Shown one piece after another: positions 4,041 to 40,453 of a stretch of DNA of 64,000 nucleotides; positions within the stretch are counted from its first letter, which is position 1; every line of letters begins with the position of its first letter. Source of the DNA: Paragordius varius (Eukaryota; Animalia; Nematomorpha); assembly GCA_964247055.1 (NCBI GenBank), contig OZ176056.1, forward strand, positions 3,658,001 to 3,722,000, read 5' to 3'. The translations under genes were made by a program, and so were the position numbers. A model generated the notes under the pieces. It had not been told where the DNA came from. It worked only from the letters and a program-made list of their open reading frames with translations, and made no database searches.

Positions 4041-7000
4041 ATGGATTTAATTAAAAAACAGGCCACTAACGATGATTGGGATACTGATCCCCATTTTATC
4101 GTATAATTTATGTTATTTTAGAATAATCTAACTGAGGAGGATTCTAGATGGGGATCAAAAACTGTCGAAGGTTCTGGCCATTCTGAATCATTAAAGTAAT
4201 TTTTAATTAGTTTAACCCTTTTTATCGGCCTAATAATTATTTCTTGCTTTATATTTTTAGTATGAATGAATTACGTGATCTAGTCCAAAAATCGCATTCA
4301 GAAGTTATACAAGATAATTTCGCAAAGCACATGCCAAAAGCCTCATATGGATACGGTGGAAAATTTGGCATCGAAACCGATCGAATCGATAAAGTTTTTA
4401 ATTGAATTTATAAAAATTTGGTGAAAATGAAATTTTATATTTTTAATAATTTAATTTAAATATTATTATTTATGGTGGGCATAAGCGACCAAATTAATCT
4501 TGTTTTTTTAATTTTTTAAGCTTCACTTTAAAATAATCGCAACTATTTTTATACTATAATAGTTTATATATGGCTTGAAAAGTGATTAGTAAATTTTTTA
4601 TATTTTGCTGTCATTATTTTACTAATTTTTTTATGTTTTTTCAAATTAGTTTTATATATTTAAGAATAATTTTCATTTTATAACATATTTTAACTTGGCA
4701 TTTTTTTAATTTTTAACTCAATATATTTTATATTGTCACATGGGTAAAAATGCTTTTAGTAAATAATTATCAAATTTTAAATTTTTTTTAAATTTATTTA
4801 AGTATATAATTTTGTTTGGCATAAAGATAATCTTGACAATATTTTATAATTTGACTTTTACTTTCTCATAAAATTTAAATTTCTTTTACAATTAACTATG
4901 TCTTTTTCAAATTTGATTGTATCTATTCAAAAAAATCTAACCTAATAAATATAATTTATGTTAATAATTTTTTTAATTGTGTTCGAATAAACAATAATAA
5001 ATTCATAATATCAACCTATTATAATATGTTTAAATTTTTTATTAACACATATCTCTATGCTTTTTAATTGTTAAATTTAATTAGAAAATATTTCAATTTT
5101 TTAAATTTATCTGTGAACAGTTGTTGTTATAAATATTCTACACATTTAAAAAATTAAATAAATATTATTTATTCTCTTTTGTTGTCTTTAATTCAAAAAT
5201 TTAAAATTACCAATTTAATAATCTTCCTATTTGTAAATATTTTTATTCAAAAACTTTATATTATTTGAAATAATTTTTAGAATGCACATGGTATAGATTA
5301 TATTGCTGATGTTCCCAAGCACTCTTCACAAACAGGTGATTTTACTTTGGACAAAATATTTTTTTTATAAAATAAAAAATTAATCGAAATAAAAAAATCA
5401 AATGCTTAATTAAAAGATTATGTTTTTGGGTTTGGCGGCAAATTTGGACTTCAAAAGGACCGACAGGATGTTTGCGCACATGATTGGAAACATGTGGAAA
5501 AGGTGGAAAAACATTCTTCACAAATCGGTTTTTAGAAACTTTTTTATCAATAAAATTTTTAATTCATCTTTTTTATTAAATATATCTTTTTTTATATTAT
5601 AGTTATAATTTTATTGAAAAAATTATTTATTATATATTTTATAGATTTTAAAATAATAAAATGATATCGTTTACATAGTTTTTTAAAAATTTGATATTAT
5701 TTATATACATAATTTCCATTTGAAAATTAAACAATCCCTTAACATATAAAACACCGTAGGATACGGATTTTAATCATATCTGATATTTATTTTTTATGCA
5801 TACTGTAATATTTGTTCTTTATGACTCATCAATTATGTTAACTTTTATAATTTTTTAACATTTTTGCAATAGTATGTAATTTTTATTTTTGTTTGCCACA
5901 TACTGTTTTTATTTAAAATTTATTAAAATATTATTATGAATCGGAAAAATATGATTAAAAAAATTATTTTCCCGCCTAAGCCTAAAAGATGCAAAAAATT
6001 GATTTAAAAATAAAAAATTTTATAATCTTGATATTCATGAAAAATTTTGTTAATGTATAAATTATCAATTTTTACGCTAATTGGCCGTTTTACTAAAAAA
6101 TCTTTTTTGGATACGTTTAAGATTTTGATATTAAGCAAGCCTTTTTATTTAAAAATTATATCATAGTTTTTTTATTTATTCAATTGAAAACAGAGCCCAC
6201 ACCTCTTAACTACTTAGTTTGCTTATAAAATGCACTTCGATCTTCGAATAATATTCTCATTTTTTAGTTAAAATCATTCAAAGTTGTTTATTTTTTTAAA
6301 AAAACTAGGTATAAATATTGATGAATAGAGTTATTTTAAGACATTATAATTAATAACCAAAAACAATAAAACAATTGATAATACATTTTATTTTTTTGAC
6401 ACACATATATTTTTTATGGAAATTATATATAACTTTGAAATTAAGATATTTTTACTCAAGTTTTTACCAAAAAAATGCGGATAGGGTCACTTCGAAGAGT
6501 GGTTAGTTTTGTTTAATATAATCAAGGATTGTTATCATTTTCAAAAAGCAATAGTTTTTATGATCAACCTTACTTACATATTAATAAATAATTATTTGAA
6601 AATTTAAAACTAAAATTTTCTTGTTATAAAAAATAATTTTAACTAATTTTGGTTTTAGATTATGCAAAAGGTTTTGGAGGCAAATTTGGCGTTCAAAATG
6701 GCAGCCATGATACATGTGCCCTCGCCTGGGATCATAAAGAAACTATTGAACCACATTCTTCACAAAAAGGTTTTTTTTCTACAATATTTGATAATTGATA
6801 AATTTTATTATGACAATTTTTTCAAATTAACGGAATAGTTTGATATTTGCTGTTATTACAGTTGTGAAAATTAAATTAAACATATATATATATATATAAT
6901 TAAAATAAAGTTTAATATTTTAACTTTAAAGTTTTTATAAGGCCATATATCTATATACAGTCAAGCCTATTTTGGTCGGATTTTTTTGTAAGATGACCCC

Positions 7001-9025
7001 TTTTTTACCATTTTTGTAAATCTTTTGTCTTCTGGGTTTATTTTTTAAATGGTAGTAAAAATTTATAAGCATTTGAAATTTTGAACAATATAAGTGTATA
7101 GATCGCCATAATTAATTCAAAATACTTTAATTAAGTTTATACAGTCTTAAAAATTTTAATAAAAATTATTAAGAATTGATAGGGCATATTTTTTCAGGTC
7201 ATTTTTTTATAGGTTATTTTTTTGAAAAACCTTTTAAAGATTTTTTTATTAAATTATTAAAAAAATTAGATTACGCTAAAGGGTTTGGGGGAAAGTATGG
7301 CGTTAATCAACAAAGTTTCGATAAATCAGCCCTGGGTTGGGATTATAAGGCTGAAATTGAATTACATCCTTCTCAAATAGGTTTTTATTTTAAAACAATT
7401 TTTTTCTCTGTTAATCTAATAAATTTTATTACCATTTTTTTATACATAAAGTTTTATTGCTTAATTTGTGAGGTTTAATTATTGTAAAGTAGCTTTTAAA
7501 TTTAAAAATGCTGTTACAATTAGTTGATAAAACAATTCGAAAAGCATCGGAAAAGTCAATATCAACTCCTACACAAAATGTCGATATAATGGGAAAAACA
7601 AAAGGTTTTTTTTACATTTTTTTTTAAGTTGCACAGAAAATTAACTCTAAAATGGTTTATTTTACGATATATTGATTTGTTAAATGTAAAGAGTTTTCTA
7701 AAATTTGATAACATGATAAGATAATCTTTGCAAAATATAAATGGGCCTTACACAATCATAAAATAATTTTTCGTTGTTCAATTAAAAGCTTGTGTAAAAT
7801 TCATTCCTAAATTTTTACAAAAAATCCGTTATAAACTTTAATAATGTTTCACCCGAAAAATTTTCTAACTCCTTTAAAAATTATGTAATTTTATTTATTA
7901 GAATTTGGTAATTATATATTTTCACCCCATTTTAGTATCTACTTTGCAAAACTCCAAAACTACTGCAAGCAATGGTATTAAAACGCATGAAATTGATAAT
8001 AATGTTAAAGCTATTGAAACAAATGGAAATGATTCCAATACAATGATAGATGTTAAAAATGCCAAAAAATATTTTGAAAATGAAATTAGGAGTCAAACTC
8101 AATCGGCCCGAAAGCTTTCTGCTATTCAACTTAAAATTCAACGTTGGGATGCAAAATGTACAAACAATAATTGTAATGGTAATACAATTAATAATAATTT
8201 TAATTCACCCAAAACGAACACTGGTATAAGTAGTATAAAGAAAAGTAATGTGGTTGAAATGGAGAAAGAAAAACATTTAACGAGTAATAGTTTACTAAAG
8301 TATATATGGATTTTATTAAAAAAATTGTTTTAAAAGATTGTATTTGGCAGTGACGAGGGCTATTTTAAGCCATATCTGTATTTTAAATGGATAGTTTATG
8401 AGTTTTTTTGCTAAGTTGAAAATTTTATTAGTAACACTATTGAATTCATTATGAAAAATTAAGTATTAATATTAATGATAAAATGAATTTAAGGCAACAA
8501 TCTAAATAAAATATCCTTTTAACCATTTAAAATACAGATATGGCTAATAAAAGCTCTCGTGACTGTATATGATAGTCAACTTAGGGTAAAAATAAAATGC
8601 ATATATTCTTACAACGCATTAATATATATATATATATTATATATAAATGGGAAATATTATTTGCCTAAAGTTATTTTATGGAATTTTTTTGCCATTAGTC
8701 ATTACTGCTGATATATGCTATCTGACAATATTTATCGTAAAAATTAGCATTGTAATTTTTATTAATATAATATATTATATCAAATTTTTAATTTGTTTTA
8801 AAAGTATTTATTTACTATAGCTTTTTGGGTTTTTAAAAAATGTAATATTATAACAAGCTATTAGCTATAGATATTATGGTTTATTGTTAATTTTGTATGA
8901 TAACATGTTGACTTTAAAATGAAGTAGGGGCATTGGTTTTATTGGGATTAAAGTTATGATGCCACCTAGTATTTTAATATTTTTGGCCAGTTATAAAGTT
9001 TGTCTTTATGCAATATTTCAAAAAA

Positions 9026-9068
<43 letters not shown>

Positions 9069-10862
9069 CATTCCGAAAATACAATATAAAATGCGATTTT
9101 TTCGTTTTCTCTTCCTTTTGTCCATTAATATTTCCTGTAACTGTATATGATTATAAATTTTTATCCTTACTATATATCATGAATCATATATCAAAATGTT
9201 TTTGCATGCATATTATTAGATGGAACAAAACATCAATTTAACCATGATTCTACACCAACGTCTATAAGTAAACCTGAAACCAATAATATTACATCACCCA
9301 ATAAAACTTTTAATGTATACTCAAATCCAAAAACTATTGAATCGACCGATTTCAATCATCAAAATCTTGTAAGTCCTACCCTAATATCAAATGATAATAG
9401 CCCTCAAATAAGCAATGAATTGGATAACATAGAACCAATAAATAATTTATATAATAAAAATGATTTACAAGAGATAAATGGTAATACCACAAGTTACGTC
9501 AAAATTAACGTTAAAGATAAAATTAAAAACTTTCAAAATGGCACACAAACACCAACTAAAAGTCCTGTAGTTAAAAAGGAAGATGGTATATCCAACAATG
9601 AACACGAATTAAAGTGTCATATTGTAAATCAAGTCGAAACAAAAGCAAATAATTTGGAAAATGATTCTCGGGATACATTCAACGATCATAATAACTGCAG
9701 TAAAAATGATATTGCCTTTAAATCAGAATCGTTGAGCAATCAAAATTCACCCCAATTTAATAATTGTAACATAAATTTACCAAACGGAAAAACTACTGAA
9801 CACATATTATCAACTGAAAATAACTATGCACTTTATCAAAATTTGTCTGAAGTTCAAACAACGCCAGAAAAGGAAATTGTTAATAAAAGTAATGGTGATA
9901 TTCATAACATACCACCATCCGAATCTGTATTAACTCATAATACCCACAATGGTTTAAATCATGCAAATTATAATAGCTCATCAGATATTAATGTTGAAAT
10001 TGAATCTTTAAAGACTCCTGAAAATTTGGGTATTAAAGCCATAGCTTTGTACGATTATCAAGCAAGTATGGAAAAAAAGATTAAAAAATATAAATTTATT
10101 TTTTTTAAAAAAAATGGATTTTATTTTTGTTTCCAAAACGGTCAAAATTTAAAATTATTTTTAGAGGATGGAATTGATTATTTTTAACATTTTTTAATTT
10201 TAAAATGTGTTTTATTAGCTTTTTTTGAGAAAAATTGTAATTCAAAGAATATTTGAATAATAATTAATATATTTATGTTTTTTTATTATTGTAGACGAAG
10301 ATGATGAGTTAACATTCGATCCAGGCGAACTTATAACGCATATAAATAAGGTATTTTTTTATATTCAAAAATAATTTATTTATTCAATATACTTTTTTGT
10401 AAAGTATTACAGTGAGCTCCCCTCATAATGAAATTAATAGACGAAGGAATAATTATTTTATGTTGATAAATTTTTACATAACTTAACTCGCTAGTTAATG
10501 AGTATTCTCAAATTATTATGTTAGTTTTTTAGATTTTCAACCAATAAAATATGATAATCATTTTAAGAAAAATCTTAACATGGATAATAACCCATTATAT
10601 ATATTCCTATATTAGCTGAATTATAAGGAGACTACAATAAATTAAATAAATTTTTGTTTCTCATATTTTTATCAATCAAATTTTTATACTTACGTTAGTC
10701 AAAAACAACCTTTTGATATTTTATACCCAAAGATACATTTAAAAATTATTTATTTTATTGGTAATATAGATTGATGAAGGGTGGTGGAATGGAGTTTGCC
10801 GAGGGAAATTTGGCTTATTCCCAGCCAATTATGTACAATTAGTTGAGGAACAATCAAATTAA
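4041..10862 (+). CDS. CTTN: Cortactin, ~672 aa; exons 4041-4100, 4122-4195, 4261-4393, 5281-5335, 5417-5527, 6659-6769, 7270-7380, 7524-7604, 7936-8223, 9220-10065, 10295-10350, 10770-10862
   Basis: NTA motif [22 protein letters not shown]; four ~37-aa cortactin repeats (GYGGKFG/GFGGKFG..HSSQ), three of them on 111-nt exons; C-terminal SH3 ([33 protein letters not shown]). All junctions are GT-AG and in phase; total 2019 nt. The start codon and linker exons are less certain. Confidence 0.95.
8348..8565. mobile_element. MITE with CAGT termini (pogo/Tigger-like) in a cortactin intron
   Basis: ~45-bp imperfect TIRs: CAGTGACGAGGGCTATTTTAAGCCATATCTGTATTTTAAATGG and CCATTTAAAATACAGATATGGCTAATAAAAGCTCTCGTGACTG. 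TA on the right flank only. Confidence 0.7.
9034..9067. repeat. (TA)17 microsatellite
   Basis: Direct reading. Similar (TA)n tracts at 20100-20125 and 55755-55784. Confidence 0.95.
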
Positions 10863-23586: not shown

Positions 23587-26500
23587 ATGGATAAAATTTC
23601 AATCGAAGGATACGATGACAATTATGATTTTGCCACCTATATTAGATATGTCAAAAGAGTTATGATCTCCAAAAATGTTGATATTAATGATGATAATATC
23701 AAAGTACTGTTTTTGGCTGGAGCTGGTCTTAAAACAATTAATAAGATCGAAACAATGATTTTTCCGGAATCAATTGATGATGCTCCTTGGTCTAAAATTC
23801 ATGACATTGGTCTTAAACTTTTCTCACCTGCCAAGTCTGTCTTCGCTGCAAGGTTTGAGTTTGCTCGTTTGCGGAGAAATGATGGAGAAACATTCACGGA
23901 ATTTTTGCAAAGAGTCAAGAGTGTGGCGGAAAAGGCTGAATTTCGAACAGAGGTGGAGGAGAGAATTAGAGACAGTTTTGTGGCTGGATTAAACTTGCAA
24001 TCATTGGAAGTGGATCTTTATTCACGATTCTCCATGCGAAGTGTGATGGGAAGGCGGTGTCATTAACCACCATTGTCGACATGGCCTTGGCTCAGGAACT
24101 TGCAAGGGCCGATATTGCCTCCCATGTGTCGTCAAGCAGTATCCTTAAAATTCAAAAGAATCGGTCGAATGATAATAATAATAATAATAATAATCATAAG
24201 AGTAATAATATGGAATATAAAAATGATGATGGCAATAATAATAAATGGAAGCGGAGATGTAGCAAATATGGTAAATCGCATATACCAAAACAATGTCCCG
24301 CGTTCGGAAAAATATGCCACAATTGTAATAAAAAAAATCATTTTCAGGCAATGTGTCGCCATAAGAAACGATATAGTGATAATATAAACGCTAATTATAA
24401 TAAATGGGGCACACAAGCGAACATTTGCGCTATGATTAATGGCCAAGCTGTCAGTATGGTTTTTGATACTGGAGCTGCTGCTTCTTTGATTAATAAAAAT
24501 GTTTGGAAGACGGTGGGAGCACCGTTACTAAAAAGTGCTCCCAGATTACTCTTGGGAAAAACAGTTGTCAATGTAACAATGGGAAATATTACGAAGAAAT
24601 TAGAATGTTTTGTGACGGAAGAAGAGCTATCTCCTATATTTGGGCTGCCGTGGATCATTGGTTGTGGCATGACCTTACCGGATAACGTGAGTGTTAATCA
24701 AATAACATCTAATAATAATAATGGTCATGACAATGTATTCAAGCGATTTCCAAAACTCTTTAACGGGAAATTGGGTTGTTACAACGGTGATCCTGTCAAA
24801 TTGTATGTCCGATCAGATGCAATACCAAAAGTCTGCGCTGCACGGCGAATTCAATTGGCACTACAGAGTAAAGTAGAGATGGAAATACAGAGACTATAGA
24901 CCTGGAAATAGTGAGTCCCGTAGATCCAACACAACACCATGTGGAATGGGCGACTCCTACGGTTAACGTCGTAAAAACTAATGGGGAAATTAGGGTGTGC
25001 GCTGATTTCCGGGTAACTATCAATTCTTTGATGGAGAACATATCTCAGATTATCCCGACATTTGACACGATCGCGTCTAAATGTGCGGGATCCACATGGT
25101 TCTCGTCCATTGATTTAAAGGACGCATACCTTCAAATTCCGGTGGATGTGGAAAGTAAAAAATATTTAGTTATTACTACCCCGATGGGATATTTCCAATT
25201 TAATCGCCTACCATTTGGATTGAAGGTTTCTCCTATGCTTTTCCAGAGAATAATGGATGAGGTACTCAAAGATTGCAGGGGCACAATGGCTTATCTCGAC
25301 GATGTTTTGATTGTTGGTAAAACGAAAGAGGAACACGATAGAAATCTGAGCGAGACCTTAGCAAAGTTACAAAAATGCGGGTTTACACTAATAAAAGATA
25401 AATTAAAACTGTATCAGAAGAATATAAAATTTTTGGGGTTTGAGTTATCAAAACAGGGAATCCGCCCTGTACAAGATAAGCTCGACGCCATTGCTAAATG
25501 TGCAACACCCACCAATAAAACTGAGTTAAGATCATTTTTGGGTTTGCTCAATTTTTATGAACGTTTTATTCCTGGTTTACATATCAAAGTTAGTAATCTA
25601 CATGCACTAACAGGATCCAAAAAGGAATGGAGATGGTCACAAGAACATCAAAATGAATTCAAGCAAGCAAAAAACTTAATATCAAGAGAATCTTTACTTG
25701 CCACTTATAACATAAATAATAAAACAATAATACAAGTGGATGCGTCCACAAAAGGCTTTGGAGCTGTACTTCTGCAAATGGAGAATAAGAGAATGGTACC
25801 AATTGCATTCGCATCAAGAAAATGCCAGAATGCAGAGAAAAATTATTCTGTGATTGAATTGGAAACCAAGGTTTTGTTATTTGGTTTAGAAAAATTCCAT
25901 TATTATATTTATGGACAGAAATGTGAGGTCTGGTCAGATCATAAGCCGTTGGTTCATTTCGGAAACAATCTGAAGTTAAGTGATATTAAAAACTGTAAAT
26001 TGTTAAGATGGATCTACAAGGCCGCCGCGTATGATTTTGATATGAAATATATTGCGGGATCGACAAACATGGCCGATGTGTTTTCAAGACTTCCCGAAAA
26101 GAGTCAGACATCCGTAGACAATGATGATGAATATGTGGCCGAAAAAATCCGACAAATCGCATTCGTGGATTTAAATTTAAATAAAACGCAAATAAAAAAA
26201 GATTGTTTGGAGGATAAACTGTTAAAACAACTACGTATGGCACTTAAAAATAATGATTGGTCAACACCGGAATTATCCGCATTCAAACCCGTTAGAAATG
26301 ATCTCAAACAAGCCGATGGTTTCGTTGGTGATCGGTTGGTTATCCCAACAGTTGCACGAAGACTAATTTTGGCTTGGTTTCATGTTGGACATCCGGGTAT
26401 CGTTGCTATGAAAAACACAGCCAGGTCGGTGGTGTTTTGGCCCGGAATGGATAAGGACATTGAAAAGTTAGTACACGACTGTCAGTGTTGTCAGAGGAAC

Positions 26501-27212
26501 AGGGCGAACGTTGCTGAGAATCCGGTATATAAATGGAACTTTAATGTGGGAATATGGGAAAGACTCCATGTGGACATCGCGGGTCCCATGTGTGGTAAAT
26601 ATTGGTTGGTTTTAATTGACGCGTTATCAAGATGGGTGGAGGTGGAGATACTTAGCAGTATTACATCTGATGTGATTTTGAAACAATTGGAGAAATGGTT
26701 TTCCTCTTATGGTTTTCCAAGAATGCTAGTATCTGATAATGCTACTTATTTCAAATCGTTCAATTTTCGGGATAAGATGACAAACTGGAACATTAAGCAT
26801 GTGACGTCGGCTCCCTACCACCCAAGGACAAATGGTTTAAAGAGTAATTTATACGTTGAAGTCGAGATTCCGTTCCACGATGATGCCTGGCGTGAAGAGT
26901 CAGGAGGCTTTAAATAATGTTTTATTGGCCTATAGTAATTCATGGCATAACGAGATTAAGACGACCCCCGCATCGTTGTTTTTGAAGAGAAACATCAACA
27001 CACCGTAGAATTGGTTGCAAGATAAAGAAACGCCTAAAGAAAGTACACCACCGAGACCCTTAAGAGAATATACACCGGATCAGTCAATATTTATAAAGAA
27101 CGAGACATTAAGAGGATGGCGACCGGGTACGGTGGAAGTAAGGACGGGGCCGTTATCCTATGAAGTAAAGGATGAAGATGGAAAAAGATGCGAAAACATG
27201 CCTATCAACTGA
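23587..27212 (+). pseudogene. gag-pol of the LTR element, broken by frameshifts near 24035, 24897 and 26840 and a stop near 27008
   Basis: Successive ORFs 23587-24066, 24057-24899, 24911-26917 and 27015-27212 join into one polyprotein when the indels are corrected. The integrase GLAE(R) catalytic-Glu region is disrupted. Confidence 0.88.
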
Positions 27213-36911: not shown

Positions 36912-38298
36912 TCATAATCTAAATGGAATGTTGGGCCATAACGAAGGGTTATGAGTTTGACACAAAGTTTCAAACGTATTTTGCATAGCCGTTTCCATAT
37001 ATGCTATCGTTTGAGCATTTTTAGAGCCATACAGGGTTTTAAGACGTTCTTGACGAATTTCAAGAGGGGCTTTTCCTGCTCTTTCGGAGGTGGGCGTGAA
37101 ATTTTTGTAATACGGATTTACTGGAAGATGTGTGAGTGGGAAAATTTGATAATAAAATGAGGATAATTATATGTGACAAGAAATGTTAAAAATTCTTCTT
37201 TTTGATATCTTTATTATAAATTTTTATGTTTAGTTAAAAAAATGATTCCAAAGGAAGATTAAATACATTGAGCCATTACAGACTTTGTAAACAATTAGGG
37301 TTCTGAATTCTGATTTTATCACATAAATATAAATAAAATCACAAGAATTAAATTAATAATAGATTGAAAACTACATAAAGTTCAGTACTTTCTGGGAAGG
37401 CTTTAGCCTTAGACCAAATTCGAATATCTTAAGAAAAAATTGATTTTATGACCTTTTAGCCATATTAATCAACCAAATCTTTAAAAATGATTATGTCAGA
37501 GTTTGTAAGCAGGTATTTTTTTTAATTCAAATTAGTAAACAGGCATATATTAAAAATTAGTCGTCTTGGCCCAAATTTTTACCTATTAATATGCGTATGA
37601 AATTTTAGAGATTTAGCAAATAAATGTAATTAAAGATTTGTTAATAATTTAAGTTTATATTTTTCAAACCCCTGGGAAACACCCCAAATTTAAGAATATA
37701 TAAAATTAACAATAATCTGGAAAAAATTTCAAATAATATTATTATGAATATTATACTCTCTAGCACATCAATAAATTCGGAGTTTGGGAATTCTAATTCC
37801 CCAGATTTTTTATGATTTGAGGGTATGTGCTTTTTTTCTTTTTCTATAATTTTATATTAAAAATAAACCTCTCTGTTTAACATGTTGACTATGTATTTCA
37901 CTATATTCTAGCCATGTTTGGTTAACAGCAAATTCAACCGCTTCATCGGTATTAATATTATCGTTTAAAATTATTTTTTCATTCATAATTTGTTTTTGAG
38001 CCATACTCCCTTTTAAATTATGTAATTTTTTATTAGGTTTGTTAAAACTTTTAGGTGGTAGTTTTGAGTTATTTATCTTATTCTTACCCTTGAGCCGTTT
38101 ATGTATTATAGGTATGATGGGTTGATTATCTAAATATTTAGTTTTTGATTGATTGATTTCCGGGTTAGGAAAAATATTCGCCACATTTCTTTTAGTCCAA
38201 TTCATGAGTAAAGCATCATTTATCCAGAAATTTTGAAAAATTGGATGTAAAAACCAATATTTTCCTGATAACCGTATTTCATCCCAAACGCTTGACAT
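36912..38298 (-). CDS. GEMIN8: Gem-associated protein 8 (SMN complex), 241 aa; exons 38298-37869, 37843-37757, 37120-36912
   Basis: N-terminal WFLHPIFQNFWINDALLMNW has the same spacing as human [20 protein letters not shown]. C-terminal RQERLKTLYG..IAYMETAMQNTF..LWPNIPFRL* matches Gemin8 EMKRLYG..AMEAAVQLSF..YWPVIPLKF. 726 nt in phase. Confidence 0.88.
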
Positions 38299-39226: not shown

Positions 39227-39885
39227 TTAAGAATATATTTTTAATGGCAGTTCCCCTACAATCTTTGAACCGTCTAGATTTAAGGCGTAATTGTGATCTA
39301 CGGGGTTATCAAAGCATTTGATTATTAGATTTTCCAATTGTTCAGGATTTGTTACAAAATGTTTTGAAGTCACCTTAATTTATTAAAAAAAATAACTTCT
39401 AATTCATCAATCTTCGCTTCAACTTTTTCAATGACATCCTTCATATCTAATTTTCTTTGAATAAATACTTGGACTTCTTTTGACACTTTTTCTTGCCATA
39501 CTTTATCTAAATAATCTTGTCTAATAAATTTATATAATTTTTGCTGAATTATTCCATATATAATAATAAAAAATATATTTTACCGTATTAAAGCAACTCT
39601 TTTATTTTCTTTTTGATTAATTTCCAAAAGTTTATCAATTTCTAACTGATGTTTATGGTCTTCCTCGCTTTTTTGTTCGCTTGTATGCGAAGAATCATAT
39701 TTGTTTTCAAAGTAATGCCTGATGGAATTAACCGTTGCTTTGTAATTTAAAAAGTATTCATGTTCTTCATCAGTTTTGACAGGCGATATATTAACTTTGA
39801 ACAATTTTGTTTTTCCAACCTTACGCAATTTGCGGGTAATCGAACGCGATATTAATGTTTGAAAAGTGGAACGGGTTGAAAGCAT
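39227..39885 (-). CDS. MRPS26: Mitochondrial ribosomal protein S26 (mS26), 190 aa; exons 39885-39584, 39520-39397, 39373-39227
   Basis: Basic presequence, RK..KTKLFKV, LLEINQKENKRVALIR and SKHFVT..LENLI..FDNPVDHNYALNLDG, resembling mS26 ([31 protein letters not shown]). 573 nt in phase. Confidence 0.85.
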
Positions 39886-39908: not shown

Positions 39909-40453
39909 ATGAATGAATTGAATTTTGTGGAGAAAGAGGAAAAATTGGGATACTTTGATATTCCGCCTATTAAATACGAATTTTTGGATCATCCTGCCGA
40001 TATTCAAATTCATGGTTGGGGTAGCACTTTACCTGAAGCTTTTGAGCAGGTATTAACCAAAGTTTTATAAAGTAAGAGACTGCTATGGGAATGTTTGCTT
40101 ACATGACAGAAATCGAAAAAGTTGACATTCAAACCACTTGGACTGTTGAATGCAGTGGACATGATTTAGAAAGCTTGTTATATAACTTTCTTCAGGAATT
40201 CCTTTACTATTTTTCGGCCGAAAATAATTACATTGCTCGTAAAGTAAAAGTCTTATCCTTTATCAAATCCCAATCACCCATTAATTCGGAAGAAGACGAA
40301 TACGAATATAAAATTACGGCAAAGGGTTTTGGTGAAAGTTTTGACTTGTCAAAACATACTCAAGGGACTGAAATTAAAGCTATAACATACTCTTGTTTAC
40401 AGGTTATTGTGAAAGAAACACAATGTGATACATATGTGATTGTTGATATATGA
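39909..40453 (+). CDS. ZBTB8OS: Archease (RtcB tRNA-ligase cofactor), 171 aa; exons 39909-40049, 40079-40453
   Basis: YEFLDHPADIQIHGWG..EAFEQ|TAMGMFAYMT, GESFDLSKHTQGTEIKAITYS and terminal YVIVDI*. Confidence 0.95.

Follow-up and report, generated by a model that had tools for sequence, protein, structure and literature searches.

A probable 21-nucleotide intron at an ancestral position in the cortactin gene of the nematomorph Paragordius varius

To our knowledge, introns shorter than about 30 nucleotides (nt) were until recently thought not to occur in animals. Introns of 18-21 nt are found in the Bigelowiella nucleomorph, and the closest animal cases, the myxobolid cnidarians and the dicyemids, are extremely reduced parasites. 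Among 51 animal genomes, introns below 30 base pairs (bp) have been reported only in the Myxobolidae and in Dicyema japonicum, whose median intron lengths are 22-27 bp (about 22 nt in myxobolids), and more such lineages have been predicted (PMC13644364, Mol Biol Evol, September 2026). Ciliate introns measure about 25 nt in Paramecium and 15-16 nt in Stentor (PMC5014332, PMC9505925, PMC13644364). In the present study, we analyzed a stretch of 64,000 nt (hereafter, the window) from the nematomorph Paragordius varius (assembly GCA_964247055.1, contig OZ176056.1, positions 3,658,001 to 3,722,000), in which an element of 21 nt at 4101-4121 on the forward (+) strand interrupts the cortactin gene. 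A preliminary description of this DNA, made from its letters, had placed introns of about 20 nt mainly in dicyemids, nucleomorphs and some ciliates; the literature agrees for dicyemids and ciliates, and the myxobolid cnidarians have to be added (PMC13644364). As far as its main text goes, that paper does not mention nematomorphs, the nematomorph genome papers that we searched do not mention introns, and no other report of such introns was found. We put at about 90% the probability that the element at 4101-4121 is a true spliceosomal intron of the U2-type GT-AG kind, 21 nt long and in phase 0, and the orthologue of vertebrate cortactin intron 3 in a shrunken form.

The element, GTATAATTTATGTTATTTTAG, occupies 4101-4121 (+), begins with GT, ends with AG, lies in phase 0 and is 86% A+T. 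Straight translation of 4041-4196 runs into a TAA (4104-4106) and a TAG (4119-4121) in frame, whereas the exons on either side each translate cleanly alone: exon 1 (coding part 4041-4100, 20 codons) has DPHFI as its last residues, and 4122 is the first position of exon 2. All searches were run exon by exon, and the joined coding sequence served only for counts of frames and stops and for short junction peptides. In searches against solved structures, residues 8-20 of exon 1 correspond to cortactin residues 17-29, and residues 1-24 of exon 2 correspond to residues 30-53 (E = 1.4e-5); the junction 29|30 is exact and gapless once the 21 nt are removed. When the window was searched with tblastn, about 55 cortactin/HS1 proteins spanned the site, and essentially all of them opened a gap over V*FMLF* whose length is exactly seven codons. 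The spacing between DDW and RWG is 17 residues in 52 of the homologues listed, which the window matches only without the 21 nt. A HMMER scan with exon 3 returned 195 cortactin/HS1 proteins. The preliminary description had noticed the 21-nt GT-AG element with its in-frame TAA and had claimed a gapless cortactin alignment after its removal. The former is confirmed, with TAG as a second stop, and the latter is borne out by the 29|30 junction, the seven-codon gaps and the 17-residue spacing.

Judged by these alignments, excision of the 21 nt would be the sole way to regain the conserved cortactin N-terminus. It would join the exon with the DDW Arp2/3-binding motif in frame to the next exon and yield an intact cortactin of 654 codons; we infer that the intron is actually spliced. 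If 4101-4121 were retained, the gene would be dead or N-terminally truncated: translation from ATG 4041 would stop at the TAA at 4104, 21 residues on, or a DDW-less protein would be made from ATG 4262. The weak look of the splice signals would fit retention, but exon 1 keeps the DDW-TDP-F motif and an exact ancestral exon boundary, the remainder of the gene is an intact frame of 654 codons, and removals of this sort are required in many other genes as well. We therefore consider a retained element very unlikely.

The position of the element can be traced to the vertebrates. A first hint of an old exon boundary at this site may be seen in several aberrant gene models that break exactly after residue 29, namely isoforms from dog and guinea pig, the model of a pseudoscorpion and an unnamed protein. 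In human, chimp, mouse, rat, chick, frog and pufferfish, exon 3, which bears the ATG, ends in TTTGTG|gt and is followed by an intron of type 0 (PMC554100 Additional file 1). Vertebrate exon 4 starts with AATGAT, with a change at one third-codon position in rat and chick, and has 74 bp and phase 2; the series goes on with exons of 130 bp in phase 0 and 55 bp in phase 1 and with the 111-bp repeat exons, also in phase 1 (PMC554100). The window reads TTTATC|GT...AG|AATAAT at the codon boundary and in the phase of the vertebrate exon 3|4 junction, and its exons of 74, 133, 55, 111, 111 and 111 nt have the phases of their vertebrate counterparts. Another boundary inside the SH3 domain, after ...YDYQA and in phase 1, is common to the window gene and the vertebrates, where it is the end of human exon 17. 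Since codon boundary and phase are the same and exon sizes match, the 21-nt element would be the reduced counterpart of vertebrate intron 3; by this comparison, it appears to be an ancestral intron that has shrunk to 21 nt.

The same comparison bears on two other explanations. One is that a different splice pattern dominates, in which either exon 2 is skipped or the donor at 4101 is joined to the AG at 4135-4136, so that 36 nt are taken out and NNLTE is lost. The latter acceptor does keep the reading frame; however, it would remove five residues from a stretch of constant length in 52 of the homologues listed, and it would break the 74-nt exon size that the gene shares with vertebrates, which makes a dominant alternative pattern highly improbable. 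The other is that the 21 nt arose as an artefact of assembly or sequencing or were inserted recently. Nothing points to this directly; the A+T content of the region is very high, but the GT and AG ends fall exactly at the codon boundary that holds the vertebrate intron. The cortactin locus is single-copy in the 110.6-Mb assembly, and the element resembles 12 other micro-introns. An artefact or a recent insertion is, in our estimation, practically negligible.

These 12 lie in other genes, beside long introns, and bring the introns of 21-33 nt that we resolved to the nucleotide to 13. The window itself holds one of them, a 29-nt intron of phase 0 at 40050-40078 (+) in an archease gene, between positions 25 and 26 of Pfam PF01951: the upstream exon covers positions 1-25, and residue 2 of the downstream exon falls at 27, which puts residue 1 at 26. 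This junction is gapless against the archease of Gordionus (P0274). The others came from a whole-genome scan for the Ras family, which gave many exon matches only a few bases apart; at these junctions, the frame-preserving GT..AG pairs were enumerated and confirmed exon by exon through the continuity of PF00071 profile positions. A Ral-like gene has a second 21-nt case (L036:1570-1590, profile 23|24) and an intron of 24 nt (L036:1713-1736), and these two 21-nt introns, in cortactin and in the Ral-like gene, are the shortest that were exactly resolved. A Rho-like gene has introns of 23 nt (L039:1903-1925) and 24 nt (L039:1729-1752), a Rab11-like gene has introns of 25 nt (L042:1486-1510) and 24 nt (L042:1358-1381), and a Rab1-like gene has one of 26 nt (L041:1480-1505). 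In a Rab8-like gene there are three, of 27 nt (L054:1563-1589), 29 nt (L054:1473-1501) and 28 nt (L054:1384-1411), the first two placed by alignment and frame logic only, and the 33-nt intron of a Ras-like gene (L055:1616-1648) has support on its downstream side only. Four of these micro-introns, all of 24-27 nt, keep the reading frame and contain no stop codon (L039:1729-1752, L042:1358-1381, L036:1713-1736 and L054:1563-1589). If left unspliced, they would give insertions of 8-9 residues in the G-domain core of the Rho-, Rab11-, Ral- and Rab8-like proteins, and gene finders would silently read them as such.

All 13 micro-introns have GT-AG ends, with an A+T content of 71-90%; eight of them start with GTAT and nine end in TAG. 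The longer cortactin introns start with GTTTTT in four of nine cases (at 4394, 5528, 6770 and 7381) and with GTAT in three, and they end in TAG or AAG; base pairing between GTTTTT and the canonical 5' end of U1, ACUUACCUG, is poor. At this sample size, no clear difference in splice-site style was found between micro-introns and longer introns.

Several observations weigh against the reading of 4101-4121 as a U2-type intron. Where a branch motif would normally be expected, none stands out; the only TAAT occupies intron positions 4-7, which is so near to the 5' splice site that a branch there is unlikely. That splice site, GTATAA, is itself a poor pairing partner for U1. The motif TAA(A)T/C occurs in 11 of the 13 micro-introns against 8.6 expected from shuffles (P = 0.13), which is no enrichment. 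Finally, no P. varius protein or transcript was among the matches in protein collections. Only a run of four T precedes the AG of the 21-nt intron, and A15 and A10 are candidate branch points by position only.

The small nuclear RNAs (snRNAs) were inspected, as the preliminary description had proposed. The best U2 match in the genome scores 177.7 bits and has GUGUAGUA intact, U1 scores 124.3 bits with its 5' recognition sequence likewise intact, and U6 is present at 114.4 bits. U12 snRNA was not found in the genome, which is no proof of absence as only part of the candidates were scored. As for U12-type signals, the cortactin intron has neither the RTATCCTT 5' splice site nor the TCCTTAAC branch site; it starts with GTATAATT, and the micro-introns as a whole carry no U12-type signal. 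Folding of 4081-4141 gave -5.2 kcal/mol (z = +1.04), that is, no stable structure and no twin stem-loops of the IRE1/XBP1 type. These results bear on a removal or bypass of the 21 nt without the major spliceosome, whether by U12-type splicing, by cleavage of the IRE1/XBP1 type or by translational bypass. The length of the element is near the 26 nt of the XBP1 intron, and the standard branch and polypyrimidine signals are not evident, as such a route would allow. Against it stand the missing RTATCCTT signal, the U12 result within its limits, the lack of stable local structure and the recurrence of GT-AG ends in all 13 micro-introns, which belong to unrelated genes; we give it scarcely any credence.

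The micro-introns would most likely be substrates of the ordinary major spliceosome, recognised by intron definition, and it is reasonable to suppose that one spliceosome handles both the ultra-short and the long introns. The preliminary description had suggested the same, and the coexistence of micro-introns and long introns with canonical U1, U2 and U6 supports the suggestion, which stays an inference. As a separate observation, the U2 genes or pseudogenes (46 matches, many of them degraded) and those of U1 (17 matches) lie in large clusters, at C3:257000-527000 and C6:565000-633000 of the genome (G000).

In order to see how common such introns are, we used 79 junctions from genome scans for the CCT, Ras and Arf families, in which the coordinates of neighbouring exon matches gave estimates of intron length that are good to about 3 nt. 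The estimates agreed with the exact values wherever both existed. Nineteen junctions (about 24%) fall at 19-31 nt, none at 32-45 nt, a single one at 46 nt, 12 (15%) at 50-99 nt, five at 100-299 nt, 26 at 300-999 nt and 15 at 1000 nt or more, so that 46 of the 79 (58%) measure at least 100 nt; with a small sample from three gene families, these proportions are indicative only. One Arf junction gave a negative estimate and is not interpretable, which leaves 78 of the 79 in the length classes. Micro-introns are frequent in the Ras and Arf genes and occur at none of the 28 CCT junctions. The length spectrum appears to be three-modal, with modes at about 19-31, 50-99 and above 250 nt and a gap at about 32-45 nt. 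For the genome-wide histogram of intron lengths that the preliminary description had named as a check, the sample stands in part: it contains the short class, and it covers three families. The Arf scan also met two intronless Arf-like genes with identical scores of 256.6 bits on different contigs (C10:1742354-1742869 and C11:1307069-1307584, G000); they may stem from a recent duplication, form a pair of retrogenes or represent haplotypes that were not collapsed.

Introns of 21-33 nt would form a discrete class. Introns of 50-90 nt and others spanning 0.2-3 kb exist beside it, in some cases within one gene. A bolder proposition is that the micro-introns are a separately recognised class of substrate in a large and anatomically complex animal and not the tail of one length distribution. 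Their branch site would then be no more than about 15 nt away from the 5' splice site, with no polypyrimidine tract. Such a class would imply that the lineage has adapted its recognition of the 3' splice site or of the branch (for example, independently of U2AF), and that introns below 30 nt have a third independent origin in animals. We regard this proposition as doubtful.

The full cortactin model comprises 11 exons at 4041-10862 (+), with ten introns, all GT-AG, and 654 codons without an internal stop. The introns measure, in order, 21, 65, 887, 81, 1131, 500, 555, about 969, 229 and 419 nt; among them the introns of about 1 kb that had been described in the same gene are found again, at 887, 1131 and about 969 nt. 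The coding part of exon 1 runs from the ATG to the DDW motif and corresponds to human exon 3, which is 87 bp long (PMC554100). Exon 2 (4122-4195) has 74 nt and agrees in size and end phase 2 with vertebrate exon 4. The 65-nt intron 2 (4196-4260, phase 2) is gapless against cortactin residues 53-57, with residue 3 of exon 3 aligned to residue 57 (E = 3.6e-26). Exon 3 (4261-4393, 133 nt against 130 in vertebrates) ends in ...DRIDK at the start of repeat 1, and intron 3 follows at 4394-5280 (887 nt, phase 0). Exon 4 (5281-5335, 55 nt) has the size and phase of vertebrate exon 7 and is separated by intron 4 (5336-5416, 81 nt, phase 1) from the three 111-nt HS1/cortactin repeat exons, exon 5 (5417-5527), exon 6 (6659-6769) and exon 7 (7270-7380). 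Between and behind these lie intron 5 (5528-6658, 1131 nt), intron 6 (6770-7269, 500 nt) and intron 7 (7381-7935, 555 nt), each in phase 1. A supposed 17-nt intron at 7885-7901 was rejected, being the tail region of intron 7.

Exon 8 (7936-8299) encodes the central region. Intron 8 (8300-9268, about 969 nt, phase 2) was checked for consistency of frame, and its boundaries are the least certain of the model because the region is poorly conserved. Exon 9 (9269-10065) covers a low-complexity region and reaches as far as the beginning of the SH3 domain (...ALYDYQA), and after intron 9 (10066-10294, 229 nt, phase 1) the middle of that domain follows in exon 10 (10295-10350), with 80% identity to Gordionus. 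Intron 10 (10351-10769, 419 nt, phase 0) precedes exon 11 (10770-10862), which holds the end of the SH3 domain and the TAA stop. Within exon 9, at 9369-9400 (+), there is a perfect consensus donor, GTAAGT, with a TAG 32 nt on. This 32-nt stretch was rejected as an intron; as its use would shift and break the frame of exon 9, the donor is probably unused or serves a minor unproductive splice.

A number of further short elements were met in the window and elsewhere. A divergent Ras-like gene (G000, C5:5361143-5361730) has four exon matches 1-4 bases apart, with estimated introns of about 19-22 nt, possibly below 21 nt. On the reverse (-) strand of the window, there is a candidate 23-nt intron at 39374-39396 in an MRPS26-like gene; its flanks look coding, the MRP-S26 Pfam match covers the downstream exon only, and searches against solved structures gave no match. 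A candidate of 25 nt at 37844-37868 (-), in the neighbouring gene, likewise has coding-looking flanks and has no family match. A G+C-richer pol region of a long terminal repeat (LTR) retrotransposon lies at about 23970-26914 (+) and includes aspartyl protease, reverse transcriptase, RNase H and integrase. Its frame changes near 24868-24890, between the protease and reverse transcriptase parts, and this frame break was rejected as an intron on account of its place inside the pol region. In a census of 122 kb based on open reading frames only, GT..AG pairs that bridge open frames were not in excess over control dinucleotide pairs, in a small and noisy sample, and of the short candidates that it picked out in CCT genes, most lay between non-coding flanks.

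The closest homologues of both cortactin and archease are those of Gordionus sp. m RMFG-2023, a horsehair worm (Nematomorpha). Its cortactin (P0027/P0267) is the best match overall, and its archease (P0274) is 63% identical, with all others at 53% or less. The G+C content of the window, about 27%, compares with 26.9% reported for Gordionus.

Ultra-short introns as such are already known in animals. What the sequence evidence supports well as new is the lineage, together with the standing of these introns as a minority class beside long ones. An intron of 21 nt would here occupy a position traceable to the vertebrates in a genome of about 110 Mb that keeps kilobase introns in the same gene. Should RNA data confirm it, this would be a third animal lineage with introns below 30 nt, extreme shortening of introns would not need an overall reduction of the genome, and micro-introns and long introns in one gene would offer a natural test of how the canonical spliceosome recognises both. 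There is also a practical side, since many genes in this genome will be mis-annotated by gene finders that accept no intron below 30-40 nt.

Compared with vertebrate cortactin intron 3, the P. varius intron shares the codon boundary F-V/I | N, phase 0 and the surrounding layout of 74-, 55- and 111-nt exons. The two differ in length, which in vertebrates ranges from 85 bp in pufferfish through 133 bp in human up to 1026 bp in frog (PMC554100), against 21 nt here, and in their 3' ends, where the vertebrate intron has a polypyrimidine tract ending in cag and that of P. varius ends in TTATTTTAG.

The likeness to Myxobolidae and Dicyema lies in GT-AG introns of about 20-30 nt at conserved positions, with reduced splice motifs, a canonical U2 and no real polypyrimidine tract. 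In those animals, however, micro-introns dominate, whereas in P. varius they are a minority (about 24% of the 79 junctions), and many introns measure 0.3-3 kb; the host here also belongs to a different lineage from Myxozoa and Dicyemida, with its homologues nearest to Gordionus. Ciliates and the Bigelowiella nucleomorph resemble it in the similar length of their A+T-rich GT-AG introns and in a recognisable spliceosome. Essentially all of their introns are tiny, whereas P. varius is an animal with at least three modes of intron length.

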